Below the pieces are notes generated by a model. The model was not told the origin of the DNA. It saw nothing but the letters and a program-made list of their open reading frames with translations, and made no database searches. A stretch of DNA of 64,000 nt, from the sequence record NC_041911.1. One strand, given 5' to 3'. Positions 17,488 to 29,698 of this stretch are shown piece after piece. The translations under genes were made by a program, and so were the position numbers. Numbering within the stretch: position 1 is the first letter of the stretch; every line of letters starts with the position of its first letter.

Positions 17488-18000
17488 TTAGGCAGTATTG
17501 GCCAGGATAGCGATCGTCAGATCGGTAAGCGTGGCATCTTGCGTAGATGGCAGGCACTTCATGGCAAATTGGTCGCCCGGGTTGAGTAACAGGTCAGTTG
17601 CCAGAGTAAACGTGCCGTTGGTCGCATTCGCAGCAAAGTTCAGCGTACCAACCTGTACACCGTTCTTCATAATCGCAATGTCGAACGAAGCAGAGGCTGC
17701 AATACTACAGAAAGCAAAGCTACCCGGACAGCCAGCCAGAATCTTGACTGTGCGAACAGAAATCGCACGCATCAAGATTTCCTGTACGAGCGGCTTGCCG
17801 TTGATGAAGTTGTGAAAGTCATAGGTAGACGGACCAGCAGGTCCTTGAATACCCTGGGAGCCCGTCGCTCCGGTAGCACCCTGCACACCTTGCGGGCCCG
17901 CAGGCCCGGCAGGCCCTTGGGGTCCCGCAGGAATAGCGGCTACCTTGCCATCGACATAGCCTTGCGATGCGAGCGCTTTGCCATTAACAGGAAAAGTCAT
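17488..18000 (-). CDS. Short collagen-like fibre protein
   Basis: LASQGYVD motif, about 11 Gly-X-Y triplets, C-terminal beta-sandwich. Confidence 0.8.
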   Translation of the reverse strand: MTFPVNGKALASQGYVDGKVAAIPAGPQGPAGPAGPQGVQGATGATGSQGIQGPAGPSTYDFHNFINGKPLVQEILMRAISVRTVKILAGCPGSFAFCSIAASASFDIAIMKNGVQVGTLNFAANATNGTFTLATDLLLNPGDQFAMKCLPSTQDATLTDLTIAILANTA

Positions 18001-18148
18001 TTTTATTCCGCCACGAATATGAGTTAAAAGATACTCGACCCCTTATAAGGGTCGTAAGCTCATAGTAATCTCAGTCGCAACGGCATAAACGGCGGTGGGG
18101 GAAACCCACCGCCTTGGGTGCTCCTTAGCCCCTAAGTGCAGCCAGTGT

Positions 18149-18766
18149 TTAAGCCAGCCACGGTAAAGCAGCAGTGTCTAGGAAATTCATGCTCTTGGCG
18201 AAGAAACTAGCGCTGACGAACATGAGAAATCCGTGATACTGTTGAACGAACTTCGAACTACTTTGTACTAACCCCCTGAAGCCATCACGAACGATGGCCA
18301 TGCTGCCAAAATTGCTGTCACTGCCACCAGTTAACACATTCTCACTCTCGTGGAACACCGGCTCAATGTACGTCTGCCAATAATCCACCGCATTGCCTTC
18401 ATGCGGCTTGAAAGTGCTTCCATCCCATACAAGCAAGAACGCTTGCCCGCGAACCAGAGCTTGATCCGGATCACGCAACAATACTACACGCTCTTTACCT
18501 GCAGCGACCAAATAGCGGCTTTCCAGGATACTGTTGCCATCCAATCCGATGCGTTCACGACAGATATACTGCATCGGTTGACGGCGGTATCGCTGAGGAT
18601 AGTGCGCACTATCCTCATGTTGACTTGTTAGAAAGTCAAATGGAAGTACCTCAGTTTGTCGACATAAACGATTGCGCACATTCCGATACAGCATTTGATA
18701 CGACTGGAACTTCAAACGTTCCTGCATCGGAATTTCACTGCACGCGTCTTCGCACATATCTAGCAC
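18149..18766 (-). CDS. Hypothetical protein
   Basis: 205 aa ORF followed by hairpin 18081-18113. Confidence 0.65.
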   Translation of the reverse strand: MLDMCEDACSEIPMQERLKFQSYQMLYRNVRNRLCRQTEVLPFDFLTSQHEDSAHYPQRYRRQPMQYICRERIGLDGNSILESRYLVAAGKERVVLLRDPDQALVRGQAFLLVWDGSTFKPHEGNAVDYWQTYIEPVFHESENVLTGGSDSNFGSMAIVRDGFRGLVQSSSKFVQQYHGFLMFVSASFFAKSMNFLDTAALPWLA

Positions 18767-18977
18767 TTTACCTTTCTTTGAGGTTGTTGGATAGAAAGGA
18801 TTTATCGAGTTTGGCCTTCTCCTCGCGTTGGCTTTTATTCGCTCTCTGATTCTTTTTTCTTTATGGCCAGTATTATTGTTGTCAGGAAAAACCCTTCCAC
18901 CAAGATAGACCTATTGGTAAAAATTACATTTTACTCATCAGACATAGGGAGCGGCAATTAAGCCACTCCCTGATAAC

Positions 18978-19064
18978 TTAAAAACAGATGCACTCTACGT
19001 CCCAGTACCCGCAGTTGGGGCAAGTGAGATCATACGAGCTTACCTTAACTTTTCGGTATTTCAT
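18978..19064 (-). CDS. 28-aa Cys-rich micro-protein
   Basis: MKYRKVKVSSYDLTCPNCGYWDVECICF; AGGAGG SD; followed by terminator hairpin. Confidence 0.55.
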   Translation of the reverse strand: MKYRKVKVSSYDLTCPNCGYWDVECICF

Positions 19065-19073
19065 ACCCACCTC

Positions 19074-19421
19074 CTAGCGAGCAATGACAATGCCCTTGAC
19101 CCGTGTCTTCTTGAGCGGTTTAGCGTATTGCAGTCGCTTAGCTTCAGAGCGCTTGTGGCGCTCCTTGCGACTCTGCTGCAAGCTCGCTTCCTTAGCCAGC
19201 GAGTTCTGCCAACCAGCACGTGACAAGAGTCGCTTGTGCTCTGCAAAGCTCAGATCTCGTACAAGGTACTCCAGATTGTGGAGATACGTACCGGGGAACT
19301 GTTCCAGCTGATGCATCGAGAGCAGATTAGTTTGTGCAGACCTTCTCAGGCCCTCGATCAAGGCTCTAGACATAGCCGAACTAGCACCAGAACCACCTAT
19401 CACTACGACTCTTCGTTCCAT
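19074..19421 (-). CDS. Hypothetical basic protein
   Basis: 115 aa, GGAAGAA SD. Confidence 0.6.
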   Translation of the reverse strand: MERRVVVIGGSGASSAMSRALIEGLRRSAQTNLLSMHQLEQFPGTYLHNLEYLVRDLSFAEHKRLLSRAGWQNSLAKEASLQQSRKERHKRSEAKRLQYAKPLKKTRVKGIVIAR

Positions 19422-19432
19422 TATTCTTCCTT

Positions 19433-19621
19433 CTACTCTTTGGGATGGAAATGCAGAATAGCCAGCAACTCTTGGCGAGTGTAGTTACCGTTCAGATTCA
19501 CGTAAGGTACGGAATTACAACGGTCTCCCCAAAACAACTCGGTTAGGTTCAATCCACTTTTAGTACCCGTACCGCCAAGGATTTTATCAGCTTGTTCATC
19601 TGTCATCAGTGACATGATCAC
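19433..19621 (-). CDS. Hypothetical protein
   Basis: 62 aa, AGGAG SD. Confidence 0.6.
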   Translation of the reverse strand: MIMSLMTDEQADKILGGTGTKSGLNLTELFWGDRCNSVPYVNLNGNYTRQELLAILHFHPKE

Positions 19622-19927
19622 TCCTTTAGTGTCTTCCTTATAATGCTCTATAACAGGTTTATTCTCTACTTATAGTCAGAGCTTCGCTAGGTTAGCTAGA
19701 GGAGCGCTATGACGCTCCTAGGTACTCTAGAAGGGAAGATAAAGGATGGTCGTGCTATGGCACGACAAATGTTTACTAGCAAAACGACCCCATTGGGCAT
19801 CACTCGGTGTCTCTACAACCCGAAGGTCGTAGGGACGCGTCTCAGAGCAGTAGCAAGCTGCTCCATGGGATAAGGAAGGGGTGTAAAAAAGCAGCATAAA
19901 GAGAGGGCCGAAGCCCTCTCCTCATTT

Positions 19928-20251
19928 TTAACGCCAGTGGAAACCACCACCGCTACCAGTCTTCGGAGGCGGAGGAGTAACACCAGTTGGGTTGACGATG
20001 ACGTGAACAGACGCACGCGTCATGGCGGGGGTAGCAGGACTCAGTTGTGTTGCTTTGTTGACGTGAGTCTTACCGGTTGCCTTGAGCGAGTAAATGTTCG
20101 ACTTGACCTTGGCCGCGTAAAACACGACTCCATGTTTGACAGTTGCAGCAGGACTGGGGTACGTCGAGCTGATGCTCCCGTACTGGCCGCCCCAACGGAC
20201 AGGAGGACCAAGCCCAGTCATGCAACTGACCTTAGCGATCACTCCTGCCAT
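19928..20251 (-). CDS. Small basic protein, GGGFHWR family (copy 3)
   Basis: Ends GSGGGFHWR; TAA-ATG coupling to upstream gene. Confidence 0.8.
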   Translation of the reverse strand: MAGVIAKVSCMTGLGPPVRWGGQYGSISSTYPSPAATVKHGVVFYAAKVKSNIYSLKATGKTHVNKATQLSPATPAMTRASVHVIVNPTGVTPPPPKTGSGGGFHWR

Positions 20252-21937
20252 TTAGGTCGATGCCTCCACAACAACGTCGCCGATGCCATTGATACTGATC
20301 GGAACGAGCGTATCGCCAGTCGTGCTGGTCGTTACCGAAGTGGTCGTTGCGCCACCCGCGAAGGTAGCGTTACCACTGGTGATGGCCAGATTCAGGTTCT
20401 GAGCGATGCGCACGCCGGACGAGTTCCAGATGTTCACGTGAGCGTTCGTATTGATCGCAGCACCACTAAAGGTGTAGATCGAATTGTCGAACGTCACAGA
20501 TACACTGTTCGGCAGGTTTTCCGGGTTGATGTAATACAGCACTGCACCATTACCAGACTGGTTACCGCTACTGCCTTCGATCATCCAGATCCGTTCTTGC
20601 GAGTCAACGCCAATCGCAATGAACTGACCAGCATACTCGCTCACCTTTTGGAAGAGCGTGGCATCATTGAACTTGTAGATCGCGATACGGTCAGCCTGAC
20701 GCACCACCAGACGATCGTGCGCGTCAGACGTGAACATGGTGTGGTAAGCACGAGCATTATCAGCAATGCTGAATTTCTGAACGAATTTCAGCGTGCTCTT
20801 GCTGGTGATTTCGAACAGAACGCCGACGTGGGAAGCCTGGGCTTCCAGGGTACTGGCTGGCGCTTCCGTGATCGTCACAAGCAGATAAACCTTGCCTGTA
20901 GTCGAAGTACGATCGATGATGGATGCGCGGATCTTGCGTGCGCTCGGCTGAGCGCGACTCAGTGCTGGGAATGCGGACACGCCACCATTGCCAGTCCAGT
21001 CGTAAGTGCAGGCCGCCAGCGTAGCGGTCGGCGTGGTCGGTATGGTATCGACAGTAATGGTCGACACCGAAATATTGTCAGAACCAGCAGTCGACTCAGC
21101 TACGAAGAAATAACCGCGCGCCGAAGTCTCGTTGATGATGTGCGACGGAACCGCACCGCAGTGGTCAACGCTCGCAGCGCCGGTGATAGCAGCACTCAGA
21201 GTCGTCAGCGTTTTTGCTTGACGGTTAATCACGGCAACAGTAGCGGCGTCAGTAGCTGTTTGCCACTGTTTGTTACTGTAAAGAACAGCGAAGCTGCCCA
21301 GAATACCAGTGATTGTCCGACCGTGGGACTGCCCGGAGAACGAACCCATCAGTGGAGAGTTTGCTGTATTGAAGTCAGCAGCTGCATTCGTAACTTGGCT
21401 CGAACCAAAACCCATCGCTTGCAGGATGTTGATGTAAGAGCCGGAGACTGCTGGCAGCCAAGATGAGATCGCGTTGTACTGATCCAGGGAGCCAGTCCAG
21501 CTAGCATAAGAAGCCAGCGCATCCATGGTAGCGCGATCGCGCTTGAACATGCCGTTACGCGCACCCAACCCGCCACCACCAGCCACCACAACGAAATTCT
21601 CGCCGGGTTGCGGCGGGACGTAATTGGGAGTGCCGTTGGCCAGCAGGCCAGCATTCATGTAATCGGAGCAACCGCCGCCAGCATCGCTAGCCGCAGCTAT
21701 AAACATGGCGTTCGGTGTAGCCGAATAGATGACGCGAGGAAGCGCCATGTACCAGCCTGGACCACCGTCAGGAGTAGTGCCAGAATAAGGTAATGGCGCG
21801 CTCGGACCTTGGCGATAGTTGTCGCCAAGCGGAGCCAGCGTGGTGGGGTTATACGGGGAACCGTCGATATAGAGAGTGCCGTCAATGTCGACGACGTTCA
21901 TCCCCAAACCACGACGCAGGGTTTTGAACTTAATCAT
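20252..21937 (-). CDS. Large fibre/receptor-binding-like protein (paralog 3)
   Basis: 561 aa; shares RRGLGMNVV, ARKIRASIIDRT and C-terminal Ig-like domain with 22259..23956. Confidence 0.8.
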   Translation of the reverse strand: MIKFKTLRRGLGMNVVDIDGTLYIDGSPYNPTTLAPLGDNYRQGPSAPLPYSGTTPDGGPGWYMALPRVIYSATPNAMFIAAASDAGGGCSDYMNAGLLANGTPNYVPPQPGENFVVVAGGGGLGARNGMFKRDRATMDALASYASWTGSLDQYNAISSWLPAVSGSYINILQAMGFGSSQVTNAAADFNTANSPLMGSFSGQSHGRTITGILGSFAVLYSNKQWQTATDAATVAVINRQAKTLTTLSAAITGAASVDHCGAVPSHIINETSARGYFFVAESTAGSDNISVSTITVDTIPTTPTATLAACTYDWTGNGGVSAFPALSRAQPSARKIRASIIDRTSTTGKVYLLVTITEAPASTLEAQASHVGVLFEITSKSTLKFVQKFSIADNARAYHTMFTSDAHDRLVVRQADRIAIYKFNDATLFQKVSEYAGQFIAIGVDSQERIWMIEGSSGNQSGNGAVLYYINPENLPNSVSVTFDNSIYTFSGAAINTNAHVNIWNSSGVRIAQNLNLAITSGNATFAGGATTTSVTTSTTGDTLVPISINGIGDVVVEAST

Positions 21938-21954
21938 GAAGCATCCTTAAAAGG

Positions 21955-22257
21955 TTATCTCCAATGGAAGCCACCGGCTTTTCCAGTTGGGTAGATGGGG
22001 TTAGCGGGTCCGGAAACGTTGGTGGTGGAAATCGCTTTTGCTACGGCGCGCTTTTGGTTGACCGGTGACGTCAGAGAAACCTTATAGCAGTGAGCACTCG
22101 CCTTAGCACGAATTCTGTCATTCAGCGATTTCGAGTCCATTACTTTTGCCGATGCTAGAACGTAAGCAGTCGGTTGGCGAGAACGAGCTGTCGTTCTCGC
22201 CTTCAAAGCAGGACCTTTACCATCCAACACGAGAGTGTGAAGGATGATGCCTGGCAT
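21955..22257 (-). CDS. Small basic protein, GGFHWR family (copy 2)
   Basis: Start MPGIIL 1 nt after upstream TAA; ends GKAGGFHWR. Confidence 0.8.
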   Translation of the reverse strand: MPGIILHTLVLDGKGPALKARTTARSRQPTAYVLASAKVMDSKSLNDRIRAKASAHCYKVSLTSPVNQKRAVAKAISTTNVSGPANPIYPTGKAGGFHWR

Positions 22258-22258
22258 A

Positions 22259-23956
22259 TTAAGTCGTAGCCTCGATAACCACGTCACCAATGCCGATGAT
22301 GTTCACCGGAACTTGCAGCGTAGCTGTAGTCAATGTGGTTACGGTCGTTTGCGTCGTACCATCTTGGAACTTCGCATTGCCACTCGTGATCGTGATCGTC
22401 ACGTTGCCGGCTTTGCGTACACCAGCGGCCGTGCGGAGATCCACGTTCAGGTTCGCAGCTACCGGAGTGCCTGCGAATTGATACGTACCGCTATCGAATG
22501 AAACCGACAGGCTATTTGGAATACTTTCCGGATTCACGTAGTAGAGCGACGGACCTTGTGCAGACAGGTTACCGGCCGTTACATCAATCATCCAGATGCG
22601 TTCGGTGCTATCCACACCCACGCCGCCCCAAACACCGCTGTACTCAGCCAATTTGGCGAAGTAAGTACCGTCGGTAAACTTATAGACAGCGATACGGTCA
22701 ACTTGCTTCACGATCAGACGATCGTGGGTATCGCTGGTCCACAACGTACCGTTAGCGCGCGCGTTGTCAGCCAAACTGATTGACTGTACGAACTTCAGAC
22801 TGGTGGGTGTGGTGATCTCGAACAGCAGACCCTTCATAGCTGCTTGAGCTTCGAAGGATGACGAAGTCGGTTCAGTCACCATTACGAAGAGATAGCGTTT
22901 ACCTGCTGTAGCTGTGCGGTCAATGATGGATGCGCGGATCTTGCGCGCGCTGGACGTGTTGCGACTCAGCGCGGTAAAGGCAGTCACACCGCCATTGTTG
23001 GTCCAATCAATGGTTGCCACTTGATTGGAGGCAGTCGGAGTACCAGTACAATCCACCGACACTACGTTAATAGCGACGTTATCGCCACCGGCAATCGACT
23101 CCGGCGCGTAGAAATAACCCGTGCTGGCGCCAGTATAGGTCATTTCCGAAGCAACGCTGCCGGCGCGATCCTGCGACGCCGCGCCAGTAACTGCTGTGCT
23201 TACCGCAGTAGCTACTCTGGTTTGGCGATTTACTACGTGCAAAGTATTCGCGGCAGTGGCCGGAGAAGCATTGGCTAGCGAACTGAAGAATACTGCGTAA
23301 CTACCAAGAATACCTACACACTGACGGATCTTGAAGTCATTACCGATGGAAGTACCGAAATACACTGATGGGGCGGTTGTGAAGTCAGCCGGTATGTTTT
23401 CGACGATATTCGAATAAGCATCTGCGCGTTGCGCCCACATCAGGTAGCTACCGCTGACGTTGGGTAGCCACATGGACATATGCATGTACCAGCCCGATTG
23501 GTTGGCGTAAGAACCACTACCTACACCAGGCATGGCAGCGAGCGCATCCATCGTAGCGCGATCGCGCTTGAACATGCCGCCGGTATAGCCCAAGCCAGCA
23601 CCGCCCGCCACGACGAGGAAGTTTTCACCGGACTGCAGCGGCACATATCCAGCAGTACCATTAGCAGTCAAACCAGCGTTCATGTAGTCGCTGTTATTAG
23701 CGCCACAATCAGAAGTCATATTGGCGACTACACCGTTAGCAGGACACCAGATGGTGGCGCGCTGTAGTGCCATGAACGGTGGGAATGCCCAATCCGTACC
23801 AAGAGCGTCGAGCTGTCTGGCCGGGCCTTGTTTGTAGTTGTCGCCAAGCGGAGCGAGTGTTTGAAGGTTGTAAGGAGAGCCATCGATGTACAGAATGCCA
23901 TCGATTTCTACAACGTTCATGCCGAGCCCTCGGCGGCAATTCTTGAACTTGATCAT
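22259..23956 (-). CDS. Large fibre/receptor-binding-like protein (paralog 2)
   Basis: 565 aa, clear paralog of 20252..21937. Confidence 0.8.
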   Translation of the reverse strand: MIKFKNCRRGLGMNVVEIDGILYIDGSPYNLQTLAPLGDNYKQGPARQLDALGTDWAFPPFMALQRATIWCPANGVVANMTSDCGANNSDYMNAGLTANGTAGYVPLQSGENFLVVAGGAGLGYTGGMFKRDRATMDALAAMPGVGSGSYANQSGWYMHMSMWLPNVSGSYLMWAQRADAYSNIVENIPADFTTAPSVYFGTSIGNDFKIRQCVGILGSYAVFFSSLANASPATAANTLHVVNRQTRVATAVSTAVTGAASQDRAGSVASEMTYTGASTGYFYAPESIAGGDNVAINVVSVDCTGTPTASNQVATIDWTNNGGVTAFTALSRNTSSARKIRASIIDRTATAGKRYLFVMVTEPTSSSFEAQAAMKGLLFEITTPTSLKFVQSISLADNARANGTLWTSDTHDRLIVKQVDRIAVYKFTDGTYFAKLAEYSGVWGGVGVDSTERIWMIDVTAGNLSAQGPSLYYVNPESIPNSLSVSFDSGTYQFAGTPVAANLNVDLRTAAGVRKAGNVTITITSGNAKFQDGTTQTTVTTLTTATLQVPVNIIGIGDVVIEATT

Positions 23957-24018
23957 GCCTTTACCCTTTACGAGTGAAACAGGCCACGCTATAAAGCGTG
24001 GCCTTTATGCCGCTACTC

Positions 24019-24435
24019 TTACGGCTGTTCTTGTTCAGTCACCGGAGCAGACAAGATGGCGGTCACGCGATCTTCAGTCAGCAGATTTTGGGTCACGTAG
24101 AACTCCATTCCAGCCTTGACATCCGGATCTTCCAGATCAATGAACTTAGCCAGCATCAGTCGATCATAGATCGCACGCACAGTCGGAACCGTCTGGGCAG
24201 CAGCCAGAATGCCGGCGTGCTCAGCCAGAGTGAAGCGACGTACCAGCGCCAGCGTAGTGATCTTGCGCGACAGAGTGCCTTGCATATTCTTGATCTCCGA
24301 AGTAGCCCAGGCTTCCGCAGTTGCTGCGTCAGCCCATGGTTGTTGAGTGTTGGGGTCAAACGGCTGCACCACGGTGTCAACACCATTGCATTGGATGGTC
24401 AGCACGCCATTGACGTAAGTAAACGTGTAATTCAT
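24019..24435 (-). CDS. Putative tail-fibre assembly chaperone
   Basis: RKITTLALVRRFT...IDLEDPDVKAG...LLTEDRVTAIL pattern; located in fibre cluster. Confidence 0.6.
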   Translation of the reverse strand: MNYTFTYVNGVLTIQCNGVDTVVQPFDPNTQQPWADAATAEAWATSEIKNMQGTLSRKITTLALVRRFTLAEHAGILAAAQTVPTVRAIYDRLMLAKFIDLEDPDVKAGMEFYVTQNLLTEDRVTAILSAPVTEQEQP

Positions 24436-24489
24436 TTTCCTATCCTTTTACTGGATGAAAGGGGAACCCGAAAGCTCCCCTTGTATCGA

Positions 24490-24771
24490 TTACCGCCAGT
24501 GGAACCCACCGCCTTTGCCGCCGCCATTCGACATTTTGACAAAATTGCAGCGAGAAGCAATCGTTGCAGCCACAGGCACAATCCCAGGCGCAACCAGTTT
24601 AACACTGGCCTTGACGCGTTGAGTCAAGAGCGGTTTCCCGCTCACGACTTTTGCTTTCACGCGCTTAAATGCCAGTTGGTTGACGGTGGCCTGGCCATGC
24701 ACGCTAACCACTTGGTTCTTTACAGTCCCAGGGTCAAACGTGACGCGAGACGTTACCGTTGCTCTGGTCAT
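24490..24771 (-). CDS. Small basic protein, GGGFHWR family (copy 1)
   Basis: Ends GKGGGFHWR; ATGA overlap with upstream gene. Confidence 0.8.
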   Translation of the reverse strand: MTRATVTSRVTFDPGTVKNQVVSVHGQATVNQLAFKRVKAKVVSGKPLLTQRVKASVKLVAPGIVPVAATIASRCNFVKMSNGGGKGGGFHWR

Positions 24772-26426
24772 GATGTAGCCGCATCGATCGAAATATCACC
24801 AGGAGCGGTGATAGTGAATGGAACCAGCGTCGGGCCAGTAGCAGACGTGGTGAACGTCGTCTGAGACAGCGTCACGTTCGTCGACGGCGTCAGCGTCACG
24901 TTTGCAGCAACATAGTTACCATTCGCATCCGTTACGGAGACCGTCAGTGTACCGCTAGCCGGCGCGCCGCTGTACGAGTAGCTGCCGCTATCAAACGACA
25001 GGTTGATCGTGTTAGCGGTGCCAGTCGGGTTGATGTACCACAGCTCCCATTCACACATCGTTGCGGGCGTAGCCGAAATCGGGTTGATGTACCAGAAGCG
25101 ACCAGCGGAGTCAAAGCCATGCGACCAAGCACCGTAATACTGAGTAGCGCTGACACGACCCAGTGTAACAGTGTTGGTCTTATTCAGGACACCACCAGTA
25201 CCGACCGACCAGAACTCGTAGCGGTCATCGTAGGCAACCACAAAGTTCATGCCATTGTCGTCTGCCGTGGTCATCGAGCGCGGGCTCGGTGCCAAGTTAT
25301 ACGTGCCCACGTAAGTGGCTGTATTTTTGTCGGTCAGCTTGTACACGTACATTTTCTGCAATGCCGTCGTCGGAGTGGCAGCACTGTTTTCGAAGCCGAT
25401 CACCAGTAGATATTTGTTACCATCCGTGTGGTTGATCAGTTGTACACGCATCACACCGACTTGCGTCAGTGTCATTGGGTTTTGATCCAAGGTCACCAAG
25501 TTATTGGTGATCGCTGGTGTTGCGTCCAGGCTACTCATAGCTACGCGATGGATTTCCATCGCAGTAGCGGAGCGCCAGATCACGTAGGAACTTTTCTCGT
25601 TAGAGAGAGTATCCCAAGCAAAGGACGGAGCAGATTGCGCATAACCCATGCCGGTGCTAATGGTAGAGGCTCCCGCCGGTGCACCCAGCGAGGTCGAGTA
25701 GGCAATTGCTGCCAGCGTTGCTTTAGCAACGGCTCGAACCTCCATTGTAGCCTGAATCGCGCTGGCGCCAACATACGTGTCGACAAAATACCAACGATTG
25801 GTGTCTTCGCCGACACGATGCGCGGCGAACATGGGTCCCAGAGCCCTAGAGCCAAACAAAAGCGTTGTTTGGCCAGCAGTGGTAGTGCCAACAGGAAAGC
25901 TTTCAACGCTCGCAGACAGATACGAGTTGCTGTAGTGCCGAGTCATAGCAAGCCGGCCAGCATTCACCGATGGTAACCAAACAGCTTCATGGTTCCACAG
26001 AGAAGTCGTATAGGTACTCGCACTAGCCGGATTACTGACGTTGCCGGTATTCGGGTCCCAGTCGTAAACCATAGCCAAACCAGCGTCGGAGAAGTTCCGG
26101 ATATTGCCATTCGGCAACGTCTGATGGCAAATCTCCACGCCGTTCCAGCGACCGCAAAGCACCATATCGAAATCGCTTGCGATCTGGCCCGGCGAACCTC
26201 CAGCAACGTTTGGTGTCATTGGCTGATAACCGCGCATCATTCGAATAGTCCATGCGTTGTTATACGCCACCGGTGACATGCTCGATGTCATCGGAGCCGC
26301 AGGAGCGCCGATGACTTCACTCAGGTCACTTACCCGGTACACTTTGTTATCGATGTGCAGGTTATTACCCAACTGAACAGCGAGGCGGTTGGGGAACATG
26401 CCCCGATAAGTCTTAAGTTTAGGCAT
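24768..26426 (-). CDS. Large fibre/receptor-binding-like protein (paralog 1, more divergent)
   Basis: 552 aa; C-terminal SFDSGSYSYSGAP...GDISIDAATS matches paralogs 2 and 3. Confidence 0.75.
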   Translation of the reverse strand: MPKLKTYRGMFPNRLAVQLGNNLHIDNKVYRVSDLSEVIGAPAAPMTSSMSPVAYNNAWTIRMMRGYQPMTPNVAGGSPGQIASDFDMVLCGRWNGVEICHQTLPNGNIRNFSDAGLAMVYDWDPNTGNVSNPASASTYTTSLWNHEAVWLPSVNAGRLAMTRHYSNSYLSASVESFPVGTTTAGQTTLLFGSRALGPMFAAHRVGEDTNRWYFVDTYVGASAIQATMEVRAVAKATLAAIAYSTSLGAPAGASTISTGMGYAQSAPSFAWDTLSNEKSSYVIWRSATAMEIHRVAMSSLDATPAITNNLVTLDQNPMTLTQVGVMRVQLINHTDGNKYLLVIGFENSAATPTTALQKMYVYKLTDKNTATYVGTYNLAPSPRSMTTADDNGMNFVVAYDDRYEFWSVGTGGVLNKTNTVTLGRVSATQYYGAWSHGFDSAGRFWYINPISATPATMCEWELWYINPTGTANTINLSFDSGSYSYSGAPASGTLTVSVTDANGNYVAANVTLTPSTNVTLSQTTFTTSATGPTLVPFTITAPGDISIDAATS

Positions 26427-29400
26427 TAGTTGTACTCCAAAGTAATCAACATGTCGGAACCGCTGCTACCCACTACTTGGAGGGAAACATTGCTTCCGGC
26501 AGGGAGACTGTTAGTTTCAGCCACATACATGTTGGTTTGACCGGCTGCCAGTGTGAGCGAGATATTATCGCTCGTACCGTCGGCATGATGGACAACGGCA
26601 TTCACCACGAGGTCAGTGGTAGCTACCGTACCCAGCTGCAGCCGGATACCAGCCAAGGCATGGGCATCTGCAGGCGGATACCAATTCATCGGAATCGAAG
26701 TGGTCTGAGTGATCGGACCATCGAAGGCAGCGGTCTTCTGACGGGTGAGCGTCAGCGCAGACCAAGCACCATTCTGACGAACGTAAACACCGTTGTCCTT
26801 CGGTGCCTCCAGAACATCTACCGGAATCCAGTTACCATCCTTGCGAGCGTAGAGCACGTCGTCAAAGTTGGCATCGTAGACGTTACCACCACCAAGGTAA
26901 CCCAACGCGCTCCAGGCCACCGTAGAGGTTTTCTGGAAGAACTGCAGCGATGCCGAGTTGAGGAAGTAATCCCCTACAGTGCCGTCGGCAGCCGATGGGT
27001 TGCGGGACAGTACGATCCAGCGAGTGCCCGGATCACCCTTGACACCTTGTACGCCCTGAATACCCTGAGCGCCTTGAATACCTTGAATACCCTGCAAGCC
27101 ACGCACACCCTGCGGGCCTTGGATCGGACCAACATCGATGAATGCTGTACCTGTCCATGCCCAACCATGCAGAGTGTCCTGAGCAATGTACATATCGCCA
27201 GGATTGGTGGAGGTAGCAGGCAGGTTAGCACTGGTATTAACCGTACCCAAGATTTTTACACCAGGACCCATCGGACCTTGGTCACCTTGCGGACCCTGAG
27301 CACCAGCTGCGCCAGGATCGCCTTGTGGTCCCTGAGCACCAGTATCGCCCTTTACGCCCTGCAGGCCTTGGATACCTTGGTCACCCTTGTCACCCTTCCA
27401 CTGCCCGGCATCAAGCCAGCTGACACCGTTCCACACGAAGAGATGATCGCCTACGCGATAAGCATCGCCGATGTTGTTGGTGCCGCTGACAGGCAGGGAA
27501 TTTTGGTCAGGCAGAATACCAAGCACCTTGATGCTGTTACCGGTATCGCCCTTATCACCTTTGTCACCTTTATCGCCCTTCAGGCCCTGGATACCCTGAA
27601 TACCCTGGATACCTTGTAGACCTTGTGCACCAGTGTCGCCTTTATCGCCTTTGACACCCTGTAAACCCTGAGGACCTACCGGACCTTGAATGACACCCAT
27701 GTCCGTGTACTGTGTACCATCCCAGCCCCAGAAGTGGCCGCCAATCAAATAACCCTCACCCAGCGTACCGGTAGCCGGCAGTTGCGAGGTATCTGTGAGT
27801 GTGCCAACGATACTGATGCCGGGACCCATCGGACCCTGCACACCCTGCGGACCCTGGATACCTTGGTCCCCTTGAATACCCTGGATACCCTGATCGCCTT
27901 TGTCACCTTTAATACCCTGGATACCTTGAATACCCTGGATACCTTGGTCCCCTTGAGCACCACGGAACGGACCAGCGTTCGTCCAATCAGTGCCGAGGAA
28001 GATATAAAGGTCGGTGCCTACAATGTAAGCGTCTTCCTGCGCGGGATTGGCAGGTAGTGACGGAACGTCCGCCACGACACCTTTGATCGCCAAACCACGC
28101 CCCATCGGACCCTGAGGACCGATATCGCCCTTAGCACCGACCAGCGAATTCAGCCAAGAATTCAGGTCACCTACGTAGCCATTTTCAACAGCCACTTGGT
28201 AAGCCGTAAGGCCAGCCGTGCCTTGCAGCGAAGCGATCCACTGGTCAATAGTACCAGTGAAACCACCAGCGACGGCAATATCAAAGGCAGAAGCACCGGT
28301 GGTGCCGGTATCGCCTTTCAAGCCCTGCAGACCCTGCAGACCTTGAGGTCCAGTATCACCTTTCGGACCTTGTACCAAACCGCAATCAACGAAGGCGGTG
28401 CCGGTCCACGCCCAGCCGTGCAGTGTATCGAGGGCGATATACATATCGCCCGGATCAGTGGAGGTTGCCGGGAGATCCGTGCTGCTCGGAACCGTGCCAA
28501 GAATCTTGACGCCCGGACCCATATCGCCCTTGTCGCCTTTCAGGCCTTGGGGACCAACGGGACCAATCGGTCCAATCAGAGTAGCAAGCCAGTCGGTCTG
28601 CGAGCCGGTAAAGCCATTGGCGACTGCCACATCAAAAGCAGACTTACCAACCAGCGAAGCCAACCACGCAGTCTGACCGCCTACGAAACCATTCGCTTGC
28701 GCAATCTGGTACGAAGACTTACCTTGCAGCGAAGCGATCCACTGCGACAACGTCATCGATTGCGGGATCAGGCCAGCATCCTTGGCCAGTTGGTAAGCAG
28801 ACTTACCTGCCGGACCCACCTGACCCACCGGAACCCAGTTCGTAGCGTCCCACACCCACATCACCGAGTCGATGATATACGCGTCGCCCGGAGAGTTGTT
28901 CTGCGCCGGAAGATCGCTGGTGGATTGGAACGAACCCTGAACTTTCAGGCCGATACCATCTGCGCCATGCAGAGAAGCCAGCCAATCGGCTTCCGTACCG
29001 CCAAAACCAGCCAATTGTGCCAGTTCATAGGCACTCTTGCCTTCGGGACCTTGCAGGTTGCCGAGATTCACCCACTGACCGCCCGTCACAGCCCAGAATT
29101 GCGGCCCGATCAGATAGCAATCGCCTTCTTGCGACGTAGTAACGTCAGGCAATTGAGATTGATCGGCCACAGCACCAAGCAAACGAGCACCGTTACCGAT
29201 CGGACCTTGTGCTCCGGTGTCGCCTTTGTCACCTTTCGGGCCTTTGAGCGACGCCGACCACTCAGCTTCAGTACCCGTAAAGCCACCGGCAACAGCGATA
29301 TCGTAAGCCGATGGGCCAGTATCGCCTTTGACACCTTGGATACCCTGATCACCCGGGATACCTTGGATACCTTGGTCACCTTTATCGCCCTTGTCGCCCT

Positions 29401-29698
29401 TCAGGCTGGCGACCCAGTCTGCTTCAGTACCGACAAAGCCGAGAGCGACAGCAGCGTCGTAAGCGCTCTTGCCATCCAAAGAAGCCAGCCATTCAGCTTC
29501 GGTGCCTACGTAGCCGGCTTCAACAGCGACCTGATAGGCGCTCTTACCAGCTACGAACAGTTGATCCAGAGTGAACTTGACGTTCTTACCATCCTGGACT
29601 GCCTCCACCACTTCTGCACCAGTGATCGGTGCAGCAGGCGGCAGGTCGGTAATCCGATAATACAAGGAGGGATCGAGAGAATTGGGATCGCTCATCAT
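26426..29698 (-). CDS. Long collagen-like tail fibre
   Basis: Gly-X-Y runs (GDKGDQGIQGIQG), GKSAYxxA repeats, repeated G..LP..GD.Y..W.W.G..W modules. Confidence 0.9.
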   Translation of the reverse strand: MMSDPNSLDPSLYYRITDLPPAAPITGAEVVEAVQDGKNVKFTLDQLFVAGKSAYQVAVEAGYVGTEAEWLASLDGKSAYDAAVALGFVGTEADWVASLKGDKGDKGDQGIQGIPGDQGIQGVKGDTGPSAYDIAVAGGFTGTEAEWSASLKGPKGDKGDTGAQGPIGNGARLLGAVADQSQLPDVTTSQEGDCYLIGPQFWAVTGGQWVNLGNLQGPEGKSAYELAQLAGFGGTEADWLASLHGADGIGLKVQGSFQSTSDLPAQNNSPGDAYIIDSVMWVWDATNWVPVGQVGPAGKSAYQLAKDAGLIPQSMTLSQWIASLQGKSSYQIAQANGFVGGQTAWLASLVGKSAFDVAVANGFTGSQTDWLATLIGPIGPVGPQGLKGDKGDMGPGVKILGTVPSSTDLPATSTDPGDMYIALDTLHGWAWTGTAFVDCGLVQGPKGDTGPQGLQGLQGLKGDTGTTGASAFDIAVAGGFTGTIDQWIASLQGTAGLTAYQVAVENGYVGDLNSWLNSLVGAKGDIGPQGPMGRGLAIKGVVADVPSLPANPAQEDAYIVGTDLYIFLGTDWTNAGPFRGAQGDQGIQGIQGIQGIKGDKGDQGIQGIQGDQGIQGPQGVQGPMGPGISIVGTLTDTSQLPATGTLGEGYLIGGHFWGWDGTQYTDMGVIQGPVGPQGLQGVKGDKGDTGAQGLQGIQGIQGIQGLKGDKGDKGDKGDTGNSIKVLGILPDQNSLPVSGTNNIGDAYRVGDHLFVWNGVSWLDAGQWKGDKGDQGIQGLQGVKGDTGAQGPQGDPGAAGAQGPQGDQGPMGPGVKILGTVNTSANLPATSTNPGDMYIAQDTLHGWAWTGTAFIDVGPIQGPQGVRGLQGIQGIQGAQGIQGVQGVKGDPGTRWIVLSRNPSAADGTVGDYFLNSASLQFFQKTSTVAWSALGYLGGGNVYDANFDDVLYARKDGNWIPVDVLEAPKDNGVYVRQNGAWSALTLTRQKTAAFDGPITQTTSIPMNWYPPADAHALAGIRLQLGTVATTDLVVNAVVHHADGTSDNISLTLAAGQTNMYVAETNSLPAGSNVSLQVVGSSGSDMLITLEYN

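Follow-up and report, generated by a model that had tools for sequence, protein, structure and literature searches.

The DNA described here, referred to as the window, is a stretch of 64,000 nucleotides (nt) from sequence record NC_041911.1. Its subject is an array of three gene pairs at positions 19,928 to 26,426, in each of which a large gene is coupled to a small, basic open reading frame (ORF). Ralstonia phages RP12 and RP31 match this 6.7-kb region at 100% identity, and a window coordinate is converted to that of the RP12 record by adding 124,000. Ralstonia is a plant-wilt bacterium. RP12 is a phiKZ-related jumbo phage with a genome of 279,845 bp (PMC5468394). In RefSeq the region corresponds to ORF147-ORF153, of which ORF153 alone is named, as a tail fibre, and the others are hypothetical.

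The three large genes are paralogous and lie 3' of the gene for a collagen-like tail fibre, ORF153 (26426..29698, minus strand; 1090 amino acids (aa); Pfam Collagen, E=3.6e-34). All six cassette ORFs are carried by the minus strand. The first pair is large1 (ORF152; 24768..26426; 552 aa) and small1 (ORF151; 24490..24771; 93 aa, with an isoelectric point (pI) of 12 and a net charge of +14). The second is large2 (ORF149; 22259..23956; 565 aa counted from the first ATG) and small2 (21955..22257; 100 aa from its ATG, pI 10.9), and the third is large3 (ORF148; 20252..21937; 561 aa; PHROG 20698) and small3 (ORF147; 19928..20251; 107 aa, pI 10.5). The large1 stop and the small1 start overlap in ATGA, and the corresponding junctions are TAA-T-ATG for large2/small2 and TAA-ATG for large3/small3. 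In addition, the ORF153 stop and the large1 start share one base (TAATG), and large3 starts 17 nt past small2 with no hairpin in between. An initial annotation of this DNA, made from the sequence alone, had described three paralogs of 552-565 aa with partners of 93-107 aa and these same three couplings, all of which is borne out.

Published gene models cover the array unevenly. Small2 is absent from the RefSeq annotation of RP12, where ORF149 starts 12 codons after the first ATG so that its conserved N-terminus is lost; the RP31 annotation gives the full 565 aa. For small1, it is the RP31 orthologue that is annotated from a later start, as a protein of 73 aa.

The C-terminal tail of the small proteins

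The small proteins of RP12 end in KGGGFHWR, KAGGFHWR and SGGGFHWR, exactly as first reported, and the GGFHWR codons lie at 24493-24510 in small1, 21958-21975 in small2 and 19931-19948 in small3. The three proteins are basic (pI 10.5-12, net charge +11 to +14) and rich in V, A, K, G and T. Their bodies are only 21-32% identical in pairwise and multiple alignments, in keeping with the wide divergence that had been noted, yet the last six residues are identical. The contrast is clearest for small2 and small3, which share 28% identity while large2 and large3 share 54%; that is, the partners diverge much faster than the large proteins, the tail excepted.

With all six frames considered, the window contains exactly three GFHWR ends directly before a stop, and genome-wide, of the 3413 RP12 open frames of 40 codons or more, only three have this end. 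Other tagged proteins, as expected of a general sorting signal, were sought across the RP12 genome and none was found. The remaining RP12 ends of the form [FYW]-x-W-x belong to unannotated frames and to the acetyltransferase ORF271. The latter (L030, 21769-22203) ends in YHWN; among the annotated RP12 proteins, it alone has an aromatic-x-W-x end without belonging to a cassette, probably by chance.

The codons of the three GGFHWR copies vary (Gly GGG/GGC/GGT, His CAC/CAT/CAC, Arg CGG/AGA/CGT). Their 3' contexts are also unlike: a hairpin after small1, the start of the next gene after small2 and a strong terminator after small3. These synonymous differences and dissimilar contexts place the conservation in the peptide and not in the DNA. 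A DNA-level origin of the motif, as a terminator, ribosome-binding site or recombination site, is rejected on the same grounds.

Relatives of the large proteins carry tagged partners as well. The 45 distinct partners collected beside family members all have F at position -4 and W at position -2, counted from the C-terminus. At position -1, 31 partners have G, 10 have R, 2 have H, and A and N are found in one each; position -3 is F in 21, Y in 9, H in 5, R in 4 and another residue in 6; and L occupies position -6 in 30. A tagged partner adjoins large-family genes in at least 16 loci, on jumbo-phage and lambda-like contigs, and in each locus no other ORF of 60 codons or more, in any of the six frames, has an F.W. 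end. The large-small junctions in these relatives are overlaps of 1-4 nt or gaps of 2-3 nt.

Relatives of ORF152 at 41-47% identity come from FLC phages and metagenomes, and each is followed by an overlapping ORF and then by a homologue of ORF150. The partner is 176-183 aa long beside the 43-47% relatives, where it is extremely basic (net charge +24 to +34), and 85 aa beside the 41% relative (locus L010). Partner ends in this group are FRWR, FRWH, FAWR, FGWR, FSWR, FRWN and FTWR, with variation between sister phages at positions -1, -3, -5 and -6. The partners of 176-183 aa contain internal repeats, namely F-N-P-G...K...P-V two to three times, R-N-[YF]-V twice and H-D-x-K-[TS]-A twice (L003, 9680-10216; L005, 3868-4416; L002, 9683-10213). 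Judged by these sequences, the RP12 partners look like shortened derivatives of the longer type in which one F-D-P-G copy has been kept.

Beside more distant family members, taken from IMG/VR contigs of 8 to 372 kb, from a lambda-like clade and from two further clades, the partners are proteins of 94-135 aa that are neutral or acidic (pI 4-9) and end in F-F-W-G, F-Y-W-G, F-H-W-G or F-Y-W-A. One partner cluster is named from a Chromobacterium contig. Profile-profile comparison finds no similarity between the partner bodies of the basic clade and those of the F-[FY]-W-G clade (hhalign probability 0.1%). No partner has a match in Pfam, PHROG, NCBIfam or PDB that would name it, and PHROG returns only the proteins themselves or unknown families. 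The RP12 small proteins have no Pfam match at E<=0.1, and for nine relatives the search at E<=1 gave a single match, at chance level.

The ratio of nonsynonymous to synonymous substitution rates (dN/dS) of the small ORFs in one clade is 0.21-0.32, against 0.17-0.21 for their large partners. Between FLC1-1B and FLC4-3B the small ORF differs at 7 of 528 nt, with one amino-acid change and a dN/dS of 0.06. By this measure the small ORFs are coding in the relatives and under purifying selection. When small1 alone was modelled with AlphaFold2, the predicted local distance difference test (pLDDT) score was 36.7 and no residue exceeded 50, although the shallow alignment behind this model makes the absence of a predicted fold indicative only. 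One metagenomic partner representative is without the tail; its sequence departs from those of its relatives part-way, which is read here as a probable frame change.

On the sequences collected, F-x-W-x-COOH is the invariant unit of the family, and the Gly linker and the basic charge are clade features. The tetrapeptide after a Gly linker was thus rightly described as invariant within RP12, but not for the family as a whole. Likewise, the basic character assigned to the small proteins holds in the Ralstonia-phage clade and not throughout the family that carries the motif. The tag-like terminal peptide itself stands as genuine and under selection, and it reaches wider than RP12.

The large proteins and the fibre gene

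Large2 and large3 align over their full length at 54% identity. By BLAST, large1 matches large3 at 29% across the last ~240 aa, and a multiple alignment of the full-length proteins shows the conserved N-terminus in large1 as well. The initial annotation had placed the shared homology in a C-terminal immunoglobulin (Ig)-like domain; this domain is present, but the homology is wider.

An AlphaFold2 model of ORF152, built on a 71-sequence alignment, has a mean pLDDT of 84.1 and a predicted template modelling score of 0.82. The model is almost entirely beta strand with two short helices, and is divided into a small N-terminal domain, about 26 strands in a propeller pattern and a C-terminal beta domain of seven strands. 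When compared with PDB by Foldseek, it matched beta-propellers: a sialidase with propeller and Ig-like domain, an archaeal YVTN propeller with a PKD domain, and the open propeller Seh1. The template modelling (TM) scores of these matches are low (0.3-0.5), and the similarity is therefore one of fold class only. The best PDB fold match (E=4e-7) is the sialidase of Micromonospora viridifaciens, in which a propeller is joined through an Ig-like linker to a sugar-binding module; at 10% identity and a TM score of about 0.3, this is a likeness at the level of fold. Such a predicted fold is compatible with a head that binds or cleaves sugars. Among predicted viral structures (BFVD), the top match is RP12's own entry and the second is the ORF148 paralog, followed by proteins of uncultured phages and three proteins of the Pseudomonas jumbo phage PaBG.

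The family itself is unnamed. The only Pfam match of ORF152 is to Big_1, at residues 492-551 (E=3.3e-4; 21.1 bits against a cut-off of 34.9), and a Big_1 match is found in 4 of 71 family members. A profile made from 10 members had no match at E<=1 among all PDB sequences. The profile search of 1.84 billion representatives returned 296 clusters at E<=1e-3, most of them proteins of 500-650 aa matched up to the C-terminus, and among the family clusters listed the N-terminal signature is recognisable. In the aligned family, D439 is invariant (71/71), and R443 (68/71) and W445 (70/71) are nearly so; together these form a D...R.W motif in a late blade. All three RP12 large paralogs align with the family through the N-terminal adaptor, the D...R.W motif and the C-terminal Ig-like domain. 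ORF148 and ORF149 are roughly equidistant from ORF152 and from the clades with G-type tails.

Among 50,697 cultured phage genomes, the family is carried at BLAST level by RP12, RP31, FLC1-1B and FLC4-3B only. Scans of IMG/VR with the RP12-like alignment and one other family alignment returned RP12 itself or nothing, and two scans of the genome collection for prophage or host information were both empty. Natural fusions of the large and small proteins were found in none of 155 family members.

Within the C-terminal ~150 aa of ORF153 (26426-26878), a foldon-like stretch is weakly matched (Pfam Fibritin_C, E=0.017; PDB fibritin, E about 0.4-1.7), and after it comes a terminal domain of ~100 aa. 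By alignment, this terminal domain is common to the fibre genes upstream of large-family genes in 12 loci, a pattern suggestive of a module in three parts, namely the end of the fibre, the head and the tagged partner. On a 63-kb lambda-like contig, a GpJ-like tail tip and then two small genes precede the large gene and its small partner, and holins and an amidase follow; this order puts the large gene in the position of a side fibre.

The phage phiKZ carries a seven-bladed propeller, gp131, at the distal end of its fibres, and the paralogs of gp131 share an N-terminal anchor (PMC13250141). In the RP12 large proteins, a conserved N-terminal adaptor, a variable, predicted beta-propeller and an Ig-like end suggest modular receptor-binding heads. 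The large proteins are read in this way because the large gene directly follows or overlaps a fibre gene, because it can occupy the side-fibre position and because the paralogs combine a fixed N-terminus with a varied propeller. The modular receptor-binding system first proposed for this locus is supported by these same features, but the label "fibre-like" was inexact, as the model is that of a propeller head and not of a fibre.

Downstream of the first pair lies ORF150 (24019..24435, minus strand), an acidic protein of 138 aa assigned to PHROG 25252, the function of which is unknown. The FLC phages, and all ORF152-like metagenomic loci that were examined, have a homologue of ORF150 3' of the pair. 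In RP12 a single copy of ORF150 accompanies the three cassettes. The protein has no match in PDB or NCBIfam and could be a second assembly factor.

Role of the tagged partner

With moderate confidence, the array is interpreted as a set of receptor-binding-protein cassettes in which a cognate accessory or chaperone-like partner is anchored by its C-terminal, aromatic tail. Here, the large protein would consist of an N-terminal beta domain of ~45 aa, presumably plugging onto the fibre, followed by a paralog-variable, putative 6-7-bladed beta-propeller and the C-terminal Ig-like domain of the model. The small protein would be made in step with it by translational coupling and, having no predicted fold of its own, its fast-evolving body may wrap around or pair with the cognate large protein. 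A conserved site of the module, most likely one on the large protein, would then receive the F-x-W-x end, with its free carboxylate and often with L at -6, either as an edge strand or as a plug. The small protein would act either as an assembly chaperone or as a clamp or accessory subunit that is retained. In the Ralstonia-phage clade, the body has additionally become strongly basic.

Several observations point to this arrangement. The large protein is the sole neighbour that always co-occurs with a tagged protein, which favours binding within the pair. Whatever reads the tail must lie in parts common to very different phages, and this leaves the large protein (in all cases) or the fibre terminal domain (in most). 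The tail is fixed to the free carboxyl end and has alternating hydrophobic residues at -6, -4 and -2, features that suggest an edge beta-strand or a C-terminal plug. Candidates for its contact residues are the late-blade invariants D439, R443 and W445 and, to a lesser extent, R383.

That the two proteins bind each other, where they do so and that the partner serves as a chaperone or accessory are inferred; the ORFs, their coupling, the peptide-level conservation, the purifying selection, the fold predictions and the distribution are shown. Some findings weigh against this interpretation. A tagged neighbour is missing in two relatives, L025 and L026, the large proteins of which keep the family invariants, and at L012 the tagged gene lies 5' of two large genes, so that the pairing is not strictly one-to-one. 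Among 17 pairs, no column of the large protein discriminates between R- and G-type tails (position -1). The identity of GGFHWR in three RP12 partners, set against the variation among orthologues, is a poorer fit to three independent interactions within pairs than to a shared reader. Finally, gel-band mass spectrometry of RP31 virions identified 32 proteins, including the orthologues of ORF153 and ORF143, and none of the six cassette proteins was among them; given the shallow coverage of that survey, this carries little weight.

The identity of the three RP12 tails is more readily explained by a docking tag, which is regarded as possible though the less probable account. Here, each body would bind its own large protein and the common tail would plug into one site shared by all cassettes of the phage, such as the ~100-aa C-terminal domain of ORF153 or ORF150, thereby placing interchangeable heads on one fibre. 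GGFHWR is identical in three partners despite the body identity of 21-32% and the different codons, while orthologous partners in sister phages end in FAWR, FRWH, FGWR, FSWR, FRWN, FRWR or FTWR. Identity within a phage together with variation between phages suggests one shared tail reader per phage. Moreover, as ORF148 and ORF149 are about as far from ORF152 as from the G-tail clades, common descent alone is insufficient to account for the identity of GGFHWR. The conserved fibre domain upstream of the large gene in 12 loci is also in favour. However, no such fibre gene is adjacent in L017-L019, relatives of ORF150 are limited to one clade, and all that the jumbo myophage contexts have in common with the lambda-like ones is the large protein and, usually, the fibre domain. 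In addition, tests for co-variation were empty. The initial annotation had proposed a docking or sorting tag after the Gly linker; of this, the tag-like element stands and the docking of the cassette on a common virion site is not established.

A more specific and more speculative proposal, to which a low probability is attached, is that the F-x-W-x-COOH tail is a strand donated in trans that completes or locks an open beta-sheet of the propeller head or of the fibre terminal domain. The shared GGFHWR would then be the key by which three heads are mounted on one trimeric, collagen-like fibre. Seh1-Nup85, the partners of Sec13 and donor-strand complementation in the chaperone-usher pathway offer a mechanistic analogy only, in that an edge strand with alternating hydrophobic residues would be supplied in trans; no homology is implied. 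Seh1 is among the top structural matches of the large1 model, with a TM score of 0.46-0.51 when normalised to the target. In contrast to the donor-strand systems, the Ig-like domain of large1 has its full seven predicted strands. If correct, this proposal would represent a new assembly principle for phage receptor-binding proteins, one in which unrelated, disordered partners have converged on, or retained, a single four-residue key.

It is improbable that the small protein is not an assembly or structural partner at all and has another task linked to the receptor-binding gene, such as regulation, exclusion or the binding of nucleic acid or envelope polymers, with the tail serving as a signal to other phage or host machinery. 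The extreme charge in the Ralstonia-phage clade (net +11 to +34, pI 10.5-12), the lack of a predicted fold and the failure to detect small proteins in RP31 virions would all fit such a role. However, the charge is specific to that clade and partners with a pI of 4-9 keep the tail, no obvious signal peptide or membrane-spanning stretch is visible in the sequences (which were read by eye only), and the tight coupling to the large gene, together with a gene order kept in very different phages, speaks for a shared complex. That the small ORFs are untranslated and their conserved end is a DNA or RNA element is close to refuted: hairpins do follow two of the three copies, and one ORF is unannotated and another has a shorter start in RP31, but the downstream contexts are unlike, the synonymous differences include CGG/AGA/CGT for Arg, the tail is kept in 45 distinct proteins with unrelated DNA, and dN/dS is 0.06-0.32.

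An accessory or chaperone-like partner, as favoured above, has precedent in the tail-fibre assembly chaperones, which include lambda Tfa, Mu gpU, P2 gpG, T4 gp38 and the proteins of cyanophage Pam3 and Alteromonas V22/A5 ("cap"). As in RP12, the small gene directly follows the receptor-binding gene and is co-expressed and co-diversifying with it. A module of fibre plus chaperone moves between unrelated phage families (PMC10579305; PMC9608196). The differences from chaperones of the Tfa type (Caudo_TAP and related families; T4 gp38) are threefold. First, there is no sequence relation in Pfam, PHROG, NCBIfam or PDB. Second, the client in RP12 is a predicted beta-propeller head, whereas theirs is a trimeric fibre tip. 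Third, the RP12 partner is without a predicted fold, and its family-wide feature is the four-residue C-terminal tail alone. To our knowledge, no comparable C-terminal tail exists in any of those fibre chaperones.

For the large protein, the nearest known arrangement is that of phiKZ gp131 and its paralogs gp132-135, where a beta-propeller is likewise encoded with tail-fibre genes and the paralogs share an N-terminus. Unlike gp131, the RP12 proteins add a C-terminal Ig-like domain. The family profile gives no PDB sequence match, and gp131 is absent from the top 50 Foldseek matches in PDB. The available part of the account of gp131 (PMC13250141) does not mention a small, tail-tagged partner.

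The pairing of a propeller head with an F-x-W-x partner appears to be undescribed. The cassette logic of a fibre gene followed by its chaperone is known; what differs is a partner that is without a predicted fold, has no detectable similarity between clades and is defined only by a four-residue tail. Such a signature across otherwise dissimilar partners is unusual for phage assembly factors, and it provides a simple sequence handle for finding cassettes. Receptor-binding genes and their helpers decide which bacteria a phage recognises, and in uncultured phages most of them cannot be annotated. A propeller-plus-Ig head that has the conserved N-terminal adaptor and lies beside a small F-x-W-x ORF is a recognisable cassette that annotation pipelines miss or call hypothetical. 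Since no cultured carriers other than RP12, RP31 and the two FLC phages were found, these four are the natural material for a structural description.

Transcription signals and minor observations

Three hairpins, all on the minus strand, lie in or at the end of the array. The first is directly 3' of small1 (24454..24487), with a weak U tract, a fold energy of -16.9 kcal/mol and z = -3.0. The second, 3' of ORF150 (23981..24004), is GC-rich, with a fold energy of -28 kcal/mol and z = -4.8. The third (19896..19925) resembles an intrinsic terminator, with a 13-bp stem and a T run (-22.8 kcal/mol, z = -4.0), and closes the array. The hairpins suggest three transcription units in the region. The closing hairpin has a terminator score on both strands.

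Beyond this hairpin, on the 3' side of the cassettes, the GC content dips to 0.48 at 18001-20000, compared with ~0.52-0.55 in the flanks, and the annotated ORFs of this interval are all short (ORF144-146). The next gene of note is ORF143 (17488-18000, minus strand), a collagen-like mini-protein of 170 aa, the RP31 orthologue of which, ORF140, was detected in virions. The C-terminal half of ORF143 aligns weakly (18%) with the fibre terminal domain.

At L026 (5786-7573), the locus of a distant relative, the large gene is followed by a gene for a 595-aa protein ending in Q-I-W-Y, with sugar-nucleotide and methyltransferase genes close by. Outside the window, three radical-SAM-domain genes of RP12 (ORF076, ORF077 and ORF079) are clustered with two hypothetical genes (RP12 record 84042-89152; L007, 35043-40153).

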